Below, one piece after another: positions 15,026 to 20,708 of a stretch of 32,000 bases of DNA; the stretch's first letter is position 1, and each line of letters opens with the position of its first letter. The translations under genes and the position numbers were made by a program. The stretch is from Zygophlyctis sp. KS116 (Eukaryota; Fungi; Chytridiomycota): NCBI GenBank assembly GCA_054661495.1, contig BAAFSQ010000061.1:15661-47660 (forward strand). Reading direction: 5' to 3'. Below the pieces are notes generated by a model. It did not search any database. It saw only the letters and a program-made list of their open reading frames with translations, and was not told the origin of the DNA.

Positions 15026-18403
<3,378 letters not shown>

Positions 18404-18586
18404 AAGATTTAATTTTAATTTTTTATCGAAGTTGATCCTATTGAATAGCTGCGATTGTTTGCAGGACAATTCATGTTTCAGCATTAGGGATATACAGGTT
18501 TTAGAATAACCTGCTAGATTTAGCATATCCTGCCGCTTTACAGTTTAAATTCAAAGTCCCAGAAATCATGTACCAAGTTAAAGGTG

Positions 18587-18792
18587 GCCAGTTATTCTGG
18601 TTTTGCACCCGTATTGATTGGTTTCGCAGTCTTTGCTCTCCATTTATCTGGCGTTACAATTTATGAGGAGTTGCAGTCACTGGTAAATGGGGCAATCATT
18701 GGATATTCTGGGCCGGACCTATCTTAGGAGGCTTATTAGCTGCCGGATGCTTTACGGTATTCATTCAGTCGAGAAAGCTTTCCAAGGATTAA
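18587..18792 (+). pseudogene. Aquaporin (MIP family) C-terminal remnant, frameshifted, second NPA loop deleted
   Basis: Frame A reads SGFAPVLIGFAVFALHLSGVTI (TM5). After a frameshift near 18665, frame B reads GVAVTGKWGNHWIFWAGPILGGLLAAGCF...* (loop E end + TM6). The expected GxxxNPARSF segment is absent and no intact upstream exons are visible. Confidence 0.75.
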
Positions 18793-18905: not shown

Positions 18906-19819
18906 TCATGGTGAAATTCCCTTGTTTGGAGGACAATCGGACACATCTGAAACACACATTTCTTCAAATGAGAATTCATGTTCAAGCATCACTGATCTAA
19001 ATTCCATTTCAACTTCAGGAGGGATCTCATCAATTCTTGAAGAAGATCGTGAAACAATTGATGCTCCTCCATATTCACCAGCCGGCGTGTATCCACCTTT
19101 TGTTAATAAAACCAACTTACAATACACATAAAGCATCCAATCTGGATGAGGCCAGGAAAGCACAATCCAATCCTCATTTTGAGGGAGTAAAGGAGCGTCT
19201 TTGTAAATATGTGTCATGACTCCAGGAGAAGTTATTTCGACATCAGCAAAAGTGTGAACAAATGAAGTTGTACACGTACTGTTAGATCCACCACAGTATT
19301 CAATCGAATCTCTCCATTTCCCATCATTAGCTGATTTATAAAATCTATCTGATTGACAAGGAAATGCATCGAAAGCAGCAGGCCATCCTGGTTGTCCACA
19401 GTTTAGCCTAGAAACTTATAAAACCAATATTACCCTTTCAGAATCCACCAAGTCCCTTCTAATTGATTCAAATGAGTCAATTCCTTTATCCCATCTTCCT
19501 TTTTAGCCAAACATTTACCATCGGGAGGCAACTTTGGCAAACAACCATTTTTAGACATACAACGTAAAAGATTTACATACTGTGTATTTTGATAACCATC
19601 TGTTAACTGACACAATAGATTGCATGCCGCTGCATTATCCGATTCTAAACATTTTCGATTACACATGATTGCTTTTCTACATTTTGTATTCTTTACGCAT
19701 GCGCCAAACGGCAAAACGCACCGTTGAGTGATACAAGAAAAACTGGCCAAGTTTGAGATCGCAGAAGCCTTGGAGGTAACTGATTTTAGCAAAAGAGTAA
19801 CGATTAATAACAATTTCAT
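18906..19819 (-). CDS. Violaxanthin de-epoxidase-like (VDE/VDL family) lipocalin with signal peptide, 287 aa
   Basis: Signal peptide; Cys domain Cx4Cx6Cx5Cx5Cx3Cx8Cx3Cx16Cx5C; GTWWILKGLN, FDAFPCQ, QNEDWIVLS, LYVYCG, EYGGA, terminal D...C. Introns 19408-19433 (26 nt) and 19097-19120 (24 nt). Confidence 0.85.
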
Positions 19820-19943: not shown

Positions 19944-20708
19944 CTAGTATGGTTTAAATTTCCTGCTTTCCTTGAGCTTTTGAATCTTTAATTTATCTTG
20001 TTCAAACTTATTCTTTAATTCTTGCAATGCAGTCTTTTTAGAATCTCTTTTTTGGAATCTATAGAAATCAACGAGTACTTTGTCTTTTGGTTTTACATTT
20101 TTCAATTCTCTTGGATCTATTGCAGACATTATTGCACCTGATTCATCCTTATTTGTATTTCTTCTTCCTTTTCTAGTGACTGTAACAAACCCATCTTTAT
20201 CAGGTAAATTTCTAGACTCTAGTGCTGTTAATTTAACTTGTCTTTCCATTTCTTCAAATTCCAAGAGTTCTTTATCAATAGATTTTCTTAAAGATTGCGA
20301 ATCAGGAATCATATCCAAGTACTCTTGAATCCATTTTTCTATCCCCTGTGGTTGAGATGCATCACTGGGATAGATTATATTTTCTGTAATTTCCATAATC
20401 TTTTCTACAGCATCATCTTCCTTAAAAATCAAATGTGCATTTGTTCCTGATTTTAGAGGAAACTGTTTAGGAGAAAACCCAAATTCAGATTTCTCTTTCA
20501 GAACAAGTTTTTCTAGAGTGCCACAATTTTCAAAGATTTTTTTTAAAACTTTAGAGTTTGCATCAACTGGAAGATTCAGGACAAACAATGTTCTTCCGTC
20601 TGGGAGATGATCTGATTTGACTCTTGTAGAATGCTCTTTTAGATACATGGCATGAATAGCTGATCCTGGCATTTCCAAATTCAAAACATTGAAATCTTGA
20701 AATTTCAT
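19944..20708 (-). CDS. RRP7: Ribosomal RNA-processing protein 7 (RRM + RRP7 domain), 254 aa
   Basis: RTLFVLNLP, PDKDGFVTVTR, DFYRFQKRD, FEQDKLKI...RKFKPY. True ATG at 20708; the ORF track extends to an upstream TTG. Confidence 0.93.
   Translation of the reverse strand: MKFQDFNVLNLEMPGSAIHAMYLKEHSTRVKSDHLPDGRTLFVLNLPVDANSKVLKKIFENCGTLEKLVLKEKSEFGFSPKQFPLKSGTNAHLIFKEDDAVEKIMEITENIIYPSDASQPQGIEKWIQEYLDMIPDSQSLRKSIDKELLEFEEMERQVKLTALESRNLPDKDGFVTVTRKGRRNTNKDESGAIMSAIDPRELKNVKPKDKVLVDFYRFQKRDSKKTALQELKNKFEQDKLKIQKLKESRKFKPY

Follow-up and report, generated by a model that had tools for sequence, protein, structure and literature searches.

Why should a zoosporic fungus carry a gene of the violaxanthin de-epoxidase (VDE) family, when the literature up to 2026 treats the VDE, VDL and VDR proteins as a family of photosynthetic eukaryotes (PMC13181403)? 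In this work we have analysed such a gene in a stretch of 32,000 nucleotides from Zygophlyctis sp. KS116 (positions 15,661 to 47,660 of contig BAAFSQ010000061.1; hereafter the window), which belongs to a metagenome-derived assembly of 12.7 Mb in 1175 contigs. The VDE-like gene occupies positions 19819-18906 of the minus strand, between genes for a PRP22-type helicase and for RRP7. A first-pass annotation, made from the letters of the sequence alone, had proposed that its product is a VDE-family protein which does not serve the xanthophyll cycle and that the gene might have come from an alga. We found no report of VDE-family genes in fungi in the literature. Our results indicate that the gene is real, nuclear and transcribed, that it belongs to a freshwater zoosporic fungus, and that its product is a new member of the family, from a clade which has already been sequenced but is unstudied. 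The protein is probably an enzyme that opens epoxides, as is argued below.

Gene model and evidence of transcription

The VDE-like gene has three exons separated by introns of 26 and 24 nt, and its coding sequence of 864 nt specifies a protein of 287 aa. Exon 1 (19434..19819, minus strand) begins with the start codon at 19819-19817 and comprises 128 whole codons and two bases; it encodes the signal peptide together with the Cys-rich domain and extends through GTWWILK, the first strand of the barrel. Read without splicing, the ATG at 19819 opens an open reading frame (ORF) of 129 codons, which is ended by a TAA (19432-19430) within intron 1. This intron (19408..19433, minus strand, 26 nt, phase 2) reads GTAATATT...TTTCTAG, that is GTAAT...CTAG, and was placed on the basis of homology and a profile hidden Markov model. 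Exon 2 (19121..19407, minus strand) encodes the core of the lipocalin barrel with FDAFPCQ, which contains the equivalents of D114, C118 and Q119 of VDE, with NEDW, which has Glu at the position of D177 and retains W179, and with the equivalent of Y198. Intron 2 (19097..19120, minus strand, 24 nt, phase 1, GTAAGT...AAAAG) is in frame and free of stop codons. Exon 3 (18906..19096, minus strand) encodes the last barrel strands (GEYGGA), a C-terminal helix and two terminal Cys; it ends with the TGA stop at 18908-18906 and contains no Glu-rich domain. Each intron splits a codon, GGG (Gly) at the first junction and TGT (Cys) at the second. Searches were made by exon piece, with exon 1 represented by window:19436-19819:- and exons 2 and 3, read through the in-frame intron 2, by window:18909-19406:-.

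How well are these junctions fixed? In an alignment of 19 rows (A1), 12 of which are full-length orthologues, the first junction is seamless, since removal of intron 1 restores ILKGLNCGQ. When intron 2 is read through, it appears as an insertion of eight residues which is absent in all the orthologues, and the stretch that it encodes coincides with the part of the read-through structural model that has the lowest values in the predicted local distance difference test (pLDDT; blocks 91-110, with means of 76 and 63). The second junction was also seen in RNA. A contig from a lake metatranscriptome spans 19119-19401 and continues with ten letters identical to 19085-19094, while two ambiguous letters fit 19095-19096; in this contig 19121 is joined directly to 19096, and intron 2 has been spliced out. 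Two other studies yielded DNA contigs (X4 and X7) that retain the intron. The proposal of the first-pass annotation that two introns of 24-26 nt join the reading frames into a protein of 287 aa was thus borne out by the junctions fixed with orthologues, by a colinear Pfam match described below and by the RNA joint at intron 2.

Family membership and predicted fold

Both pieces of the protein exceed the cut-off of the Pfam VDE family PF07137, which is 25.7 bits. Exon 1 matches profile positions 3-101 (E 6.6e-12, 45.9 bits) and exons 2 and 3 match positions 103-240 of 242 (E 2.1e-9, 37.7 bits), with exon 2 alone reaching E 3.3e-6. The profile is colinear over intron 1, passing from 101 to 103 with nothing lost, and it is covered over its whole length by the two pieces taken one after the other. 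Residues 1-20 (19760..19819, minus strand) form a predicted signal peptide with the sequence MK, a nine-residue core of Leu, Ile and Val, and KSVTSKASA, likely cut after ASA. This signal-peptide-like N-terminus, noted already in the first-pass annotation, was judged by eye and by a hydropathy scan only, in which the peak of 3.4 falls on residues 3-11; the orthologues have hydrophobic N-termini too.

The signal peptide is followed by a domain with ten Cys (residues 29-93; 19541..19735, minus strand), which was delimited by alignment to C9-C72 of Arabidopsis VDE. Its Cys residues, at positions 29, 34, 41, 47, 53, 57, 66, 70, 87 and 93, are spaced Cx4Cx6Cx5Cx5Cx3Cx8Cx3Cx16Cx5C, exactly as the annotation had stated, and align one to one with C9, C14, C21, C27, C33, C37, C46, C50, C65 and C72 of the Arabidopsis protein, the ten Cys listed as conserved in the VDE N-domain (PMC13181403). 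The equivalents of C118 and C249 are retained as well, and the protein has six additional Cys that are peculiar to its clade. All the motifs named earlier for the lipocalin part are present: GTWWILK-G-LN over the first junction, FDAFPCQ, EDWIVLS, and YVYC followed over the second junction by GGYTPAGEYGGA. The protein ends nine residues past its last conserved Cys, and the Glu-rich C-terminal domain of about 100 aa is absent.

An AlphaFold2 model was built for the orthologue P0007, which is 61% identical, from an alignment of 95 rows that included the window pieces. The model (pLDDT 90.5, predicted template modelling score 0.86) consists of four helices, an eight-stranded barrel and a C-terminal helix, and its N-domain is a four-helix unit with pLDDT >90. 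Its best match in the PDB is 3cqn (E 4e-9, template modelling (TM) score 0.73 by target), which ranks above ApoD and other lipocalins. Its matches in the ESM Atlas include a Porifera-labelled cluster of a "VDE lipocalin domain-containing protein" with a TM of 0.80 and plant VDE with a TM of 0.74 over 256 residues. The exon 2-3 piece of the window gene matches 3CQN, the lipocalin domain of Arabidopsis VDE, at the level of sequence (E 2.8e-4) and is itself modelled as a lipocalin (pLDDT 84), for which 3cqn and 3cqr are among the top matches and have the highest sequence identity. Both the ten-Cys N-domain and the eight-stranded lipocalin barrel were therefore found. It is well supported that the product is a disulfide-rich member of the VDE family (PF07137) with a short C-terminus and no acidic tail, and it is predicted to enter the secretory pathway. 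The membership suggested by the first-pass annotation thus stands, with PF07137 on both pieces and 3cqn as the best PDB fold of the orthologue model.

Residues of the lipocalin cavity

Could the protein still be a xanthophyll-cycle VDE? We mapped its residues in Arabidopsis VDE numbering, taking the roles of the residues from PMC13181403. D114, Q119, F123, W179 and Y198 are retained, whereas D177 is changed to Glu, H121 to Asp, R138 to Cys, Y214 to Val and D117 to Pro; two positions that line violaxanthin also differ, Q153 being Val and F155 a gap. In the clade to which the protein belongs (clade W, see below), 28 members could be compared: D114, Glu at 177 and Y198 occur in 28/28, W179 and Q119 in 27/28. 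Of the features that mark canonical VDE, the pair Asp177 and Tyr198 is thus present only in its Tyr, with Glu at position 177; the residues of the pH switch and of dimerisation (H121, Y214, R138 and D117) are all replaced; the Glu-rich C-terminal domain is missing; and the protein does not group with plant and algal VDE in the tree. It is well supported that this is not a xanthophyll-cycle VDE, because of the Glu at D177, the lack of the H121/R138/Y214 pH switch and the absence of the Glu-rich tail. Here the mapping agrees with the first-pass annotation in each particular (D177 as Glu, H121 as Asp, Y198 kept, no Glu-rich tail, extra Cys, six in number), and its verdict on the xanthophyll cycle is upheld by the changed switch residues, the missing tail and the separate clade of VDE.

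VDL and VDR have Glu at 177, keep Y198 and have lost the acidic tail (PMC13181403). The same three features, Glu at 177, Tyr198 and no acidic tail, were found in the window protein. The other marks of VDL, an enlarged lipocalin domain and an uncharged C-terminal domain in a protein of about 450-555 aa, were not: the window protein has 287 aa without a C-terminal domain, and the insertions that its barrel shows relative to VDE are all short.

Relatives of the protein and paralogues in the same genome

When the exon 2-3 piece was used as the query of a word-based search, 36 proteins were returned, most of 280-290 aa, which are 47-61% identical, and a further match at 93% identity from a close strain. 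An exhaustive profile search returned 949 cluster representatives at E <= 1e-3, 68 of them at E <= 1e-30. Taxon labels were obtained for 6/30 of the proteins looked up, and most rows of our tree are unlabelled. The named members come from very different organisms. The P0042/P0044 cluster is from sponges and was found on a 1.83-Mb contig of 161x depth in an ENA assembly, in the Halichondria panicea run SRR15711138 (PMC8994243) and in the sponge metagenome JAHZIO, with the same PEMT/ICMT neighbour in all three data sets. P0050 is Cvel_6806 of Chromera velia, P0080 is from the dinoflagellate Polarella glacialis (A0A813HXZ1) and the cluster of P0063 includes Euglena mutabilis. P0166 is XP_064612532.1 of the chiton Liolophura sinensis, encoded on a 36.6-Mb scaffold, and P0185 is a transcript of the diplonemid Namystynia karyoxenos.

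The tree was calculated with IQ-TREE under LG+C20+F+G4 with posterior mean site frequencies (PMSF) from 75 rows and 268 columns, and was drawn with a midpoint root. Arabidopsis, Selaginella, Raphidocelis and Rhizochromulina served as anchors for canonical VDE; a word search based on the alignment returned canonical plant VDEs almost exclusively, and neither VDL nor VDR. The two exon pieces of the window gene, entered as separate rows, independently join P0005 (100/97) within clade W of 27 rows (98/96), which includes the sponge sequences. Chromera and P0055 together are sister to the pair of window gene and P0005, a grouping that is moderately supported (87/81). The dinoflagellate and euglenid sequences join in a wider clade, which has 37 rows (100/96). 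Clade W, made up of proteins of about 285 aa, is distinct and well supported, and spans demosponges, Chromera velia and many uncultured aquatic eukaryotes. Canonical VDE forms a separate clade (100/100), the window gene lying outside it, and the chiton and diplonemid sequences belong to two further clades. The phylogeny that the first-pass annotation had called for thus separates the protein from canonical VDE and places opisthokont matches, those of sponges, in its own clade; the separation concerns VDE, as the tree held no characterised VDL or VDR.

Some observations on the surroundings of the relatives may be added. The sponge copies (L007 6001-6588, L008 848-1435 and L013 6001-6876) are uninterrupted ORFs which adjoin a gene for a methyltransferase of PEMT/ICMT type. 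A 603-kb eukaryotic contig of ENA ERZ26695902 carries two clade-W genes in tandem (L006 6001-6861 and 7074-7925), encoding 286 and 283 aa; as drawn with the midpoint root, the pair is the earliest branch of the clade. PRP22 and RRP7 of the window were compared by tblastn with the loci L005-L013, and the sole match was a weak one to a different DEAH helicase on L006; no shared gene neighbourhood emerged. Nor did the genes beside two other orthologues hint at a function: on L015 the neighbour encodes a cytochrome-b5-flavin amine oxidase, and on L014 it is a TPR gene.

The window gene is not the only member of the family in its genome. One paralogue (G000 C60:20040-20738; L001 1390-2268, plus strand) is a single ORF of 292 codons which scores 95 bits to the Pfam profile. 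The other (G000 C44:24730-25059 with a downstream exon; L003 1345-1851 and 1929-2312, plus strand) has two exons, with a break in its ORF that is typical of an intron. Both are 22-33% identical to the window gene and fall in a different clade (100/99); their closest relatives are proteins from two metagenome assemblies, 69-70% identical. The three VDE-family genes of this genome therefore lie in two clades, and forcing them into one costs 249 log-likelihood units and is rejected (approximately unbiased (AU) test, p 3e-5).

The locus and its organism

The DNA of the window was detected in freshwater and estuary metagenomes, and the sequence of the gene was at least 99% identical in other freshwater and estuary studies. 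One neighbour of the VDE-like gene encodes a DEAH helicase with S1, DEAD, Helicase_C, HA2 and OB_NTP_bind domains, which identify it as a PRP22/DHX8-type protein; the other neighbour is RRP7. The PRP22 gene contains an intron of 24 nt (17351-17374, plus strand, GTAAT...GTAG) within helicase motif VI, and its removal restores GPGK-CYRLYTE. This intron is of the same class as those of the VDE-like gene, and the GC contents of the two genes are 38.2% (VDE-like) and 38.1% (PRP22). It is very unlikely that the gene is a contaminant or part of a chimera, because its introns are host-style as in PRP22 and its GC content matches. The description of the introns as host-style, given in the first-pass annotation, was confirmed by the 24-nt GTAAT...TAG intron of PRP22 and by these GC values.

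Two observations concern the neighbourhood itself. In the lake RNA library that contained the spliced contig, two further contigs match RRP7 (20204-20589, minus strand) with 95-99% identity, which shows that genes of this organism, or of a close strain, were being transcribed in the lake sample. Within the gap of 660 nt between PRP22 and the VDE-like gene, aquaporin-like pieces occur in two reading frames (18560-18790, plus strand). One of them ends ...HWIFWAGPILGGLLAAGCF... and then a stop, and they may be either the last small exons of an MIP gene or a remnant; one ORF scanned in this stretch gave no match in Pfam.

What kind of cell is this? The assembly gave four matches to rhodopsin domains. 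Two tandem rhodopsin genes (G000 C71:25549-28121; L017 and L018) were found, and behind one of them a guanylate-cyclase catalytic domain is encoded on the same strand. To our knowledge, this combination of rhodopsin and guanylate cyclase is known only from zoosporic fungi, and it points to such a fungus. Introns of 24-26 nt had also raised the possibility of a ciliate-type genetic code, which we rejected in view of the long uninterrupted ORFs in the standard code and of the rhodopsin-cyclase architecture.

The assembly also encodes a beta-carotene dioxygenase of Blh type (G000 C42:26057-26989; L022), which matches PF15461 at 102 bits. A squalene synthase and an NDUFAF6-like SQS_PSY protein are present, but family searches of the assembly detected no phytoene synthase, no CrtI-type desaturase, neither type of lycopene cyclase and no RPE65 oxygenase. 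This gene content suggests that the fungus may be a carotenoid auxotroph which still makes retinal. Should these genes truly be missing, the cell must rely on an external supply of carotenoids, and a role in the handling of algal xanthophylls would be plausible for its three VDE-family proteins, all putatively secreted.

Discussion

We think that the protein is probably an epoxide-opening enzyme of VDE/VDL type, using an acid and a Tyr, in a secreted or lumenal setting and on a substrate of external origin, as far as the sequence allows one to judge. The Glu at the D177 position would form, together with Tyr198, Trp179, Asp114 and Gln119, a retained set of cavity residues, and the protein would protonate and open a 5,6-epoxide on a carotenoid-like lipid. 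The reaction may be a tautomerisation of the VDL type or an ascorbate-dependent de-epoxidation; VDL1 needs no ascorbate, and at neutral pH about 20% of its activity remains (PMC7056318). We favour an enzyme because the buried acid and Tyr, with W179, D114 and Q119, are constant in at least 27/28 members of the clade. Since the thylakoid pH switch (H121, R138, Y214 and D117) is absent, the protein would act free of that control. The loss of the switch and the signal peptide in a cell without plastids would place its action in the secretory pathway, in an acidic vesicle or outside the cell. Its substrate would probably be drawn from algae or other food, because no genes for synthesis were seen, yet the Blh dioxygenase and the rhodopsin-guanylyl cyclases are present.

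Several points weigh against this proposal. Lipocalins are mostly carriers and not enzymes, and the conservation of the five cavity residues would also be compatible with binding. The absences of carotenoid genes are those of an assembly in 1175 contigs whose completeness is not established. At the level of the gene model, intron 2 is supported in RNA by one contig of low depth, which has just 12 letters on one side of the joint, and intron 1 is without RNA support, as no contig in any read run extends across it.

Is the protein then a carrier? A non-catalytic, secreted carrier or scavenger of a hydrophobic ligand such as a carotenoid, retinoid, sterol or fatty acid, in which the VDE-type residues were kept for binding, seems unlikely to us. 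The fold matches to ApoD, RBP, L-PGDS and nitrophorins are nearly as good as those to VDE, the switch residues for pH and dimerisation are lost, and three extra putative disulfides would suit a stable extracellular binder. Such a protein would also be of use to an organism which needs beta-carotene for Blh and the rhodopsins and is seemingly unable to make it. However, the buried acid and Tyr are invariant in 28/28 clade members exactly at the catalytic positions of VDE, and the ten-Cys domain, which is required for VDE activity (PMC13181403), is fully present. It may also be that the protein is an enzyme which acts on something other than a carotenoid; as substrates, an epoxy-sterol, an epoxy fatty acid or oxylipin, or another terpenoid epoxide might be considered. 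The assembly encodes no source of epoxy-carotenoids, two of the residues that line violaxanthin are altered (Q153 and F155), and members of the family are carried by heterotrophs as unlike as sponges, chitons and diplonemids. We nevertheless regard this as rather improbable: the characterised members VDE, VDL1, VDL2 and GtVDL all act on 5,6-epoxy-xanthophylls (PMC13181403, PMC7056318), W179, the main residue for stacking of the carotenoid, is present in 27/28 clade members, and the named heterotrophs all meet algal pigments in their food.

More questions are raised by the origin of the gene. The first-pass annotation had suggested acquisition from an alga, and the gene, or the whole of clade W, could have entered the fungal lineage by horizontal transfer and been domesticated with host introns. 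The nearest named relative is indeed an alga, Chromera velia, the wider clade includes Polarella and the Euglena mutabilis cluster, the distribution over eukaryotes is patchy, the sponge copies are intronless single ORFs, and the family is regarded as one of photosynthetic eukaryotes. Against this, nuclear contigs of demosponges lie within the same clade (98/96), the chiton and the diplonemid carry members of other clades, and, with monophyly of the three copies of this genome rejected, one would have to assume two transfers or more. Beyond close strains the highest identity is 61%, the gene resembles its host fully in introns and GC content, and most clade members are without a taxon label, so that a donor cannot be named. 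There is thus no support for a recent algal transfer; an ancient one is possible, given the Chromera neighbour and the patchy distribution. We give little credence to transfer as a whole, and the broad presence in opisthokonts which would speak against it was seen in part, in the genes of sponges and the chiton. Nor is the gene unique, as had been implied, since sponges, Chromera, the chiton and the diplonemid have members of the family and the genome itself has two paralogues. Could the gene instead be an algal contaminant stitched into a fungal contig? The assembly is derived from a metagenome, and no contig from any read run crosses the borders of the gene into RRP7 or PRP22, so that no independent contig bridges it to either neighbour in one piece. 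We consider such an artefact extremely improbable. The GTA...AG introns of 24-26 nt and the GC content are shared with PRP22. The genome carries two paralogues on contigs other than this one, and the ORF of one paralogue has an intron-type break. Moreover, other studies of freshwater and estuaries contain the same sequence with an identity of at least 99%.

If the protein is an epoxide-opening enzyme, what might be its use? We can offer a wider hypothesis, to which we assign a low probability: that the VDE-family lipocalins of organisms which eat or parasitize algae (the chytrid, sponges, molluscs and diplonemids) are enzymes opening the 5,6-epoxides of xanthophylls in the diet, violaxanthin, diadinoxanthin and fucoxanthin among them. 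In the chytrid, the three secreted paralogues would then take part in a salvage of pigments by a carotenoid-auxotrophic cell, feeding the need for beta-carotene or retinal of Blh and the rhodopsin-guanylyl-cyclases. As a result on a single gene our finding is modest, and its value lies mainly in the heterotrophs that carry expressed VDE-family genes. Short, predicted secreted proteins of this family are encoded in nuclear genomes of heterotrophs, including fungi and animals, and are expressed, which weakens the assumption that ties the origin and function of the family to plastids. They are also concrete candidates for carotenoid-modifying enzymes in organisms that obtain carotenoids only from food.

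How does the protein compare with those already described? With VDE/NPQ1, whose Arabidopsis lipocalin domain is known from PDB 3CQN/3CQR, it shares PF07137, a near-identical spacing of the ten Cys, C118, C249, the barrel and the residues D114, Q119, F123, W179 and Y198. It differs in the Glu at D177, the loss of the pH switch and of the dimer contacts, the absence of the Glu-rich domain and the six extra Cys. At the N-terminus it has a predicted signal peptide and no more, the organism being devoid of plastids, and VDE forms its own clade (100/100). With VDL1, VDL2 and GtVDL of chromalveolate algae, which are violaxanthin-neoxanthin and diadinoxanthin-allenoxanthin tautomerases, the protein has in common the Glu at D177, Y198 and the lack of an acidic tail, but these proteins far exceed its 287 aa: they have about 450-555 aa, their lipocalin domain is larger, and they possess a C-terminal domain that is uncharged. 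PtVDL1 retains 6/8 Cys, whereas the window protein has all ten, a comparison made by description (PMC2483416, PMC7056318). VDR of plants and algae likewise has a Cys-rich N-domain, a lipocalin and Glu at 177 (PMC13181403). It has, however, about 520-590 aa, is located in plastids and lacks the PF07137 signature according to a description of 2008 (PMC2483416), while the window protein matches PF07137 on both halves. The one animal sequence noted in 2008, an oyster expressed sequence tag that fell near VDL, was dismissed as probable algal contamination (PMC2483416).

There is also a likeness to proteins which sequence databases list, for animals and protists, simply as "VDE lipocalin domain-containing", namely those of the chiton (XP_064612532.1), of Porifera- and Mollusca-labelled clusters in the ESM Atlas, of Namystynia and of Polarella (A0A813HXZ1). 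They belong to the same family, have about 270-300 aa and Glu at 177, and are without the tail. The chiton and diplonemid proteins fall in clades other than that of the window gene. The sponge members belong to its own clade, with 55-58% identity; they are encoded by single ORFs, whereas the chytrid copy is interrupted by two tiny introns.

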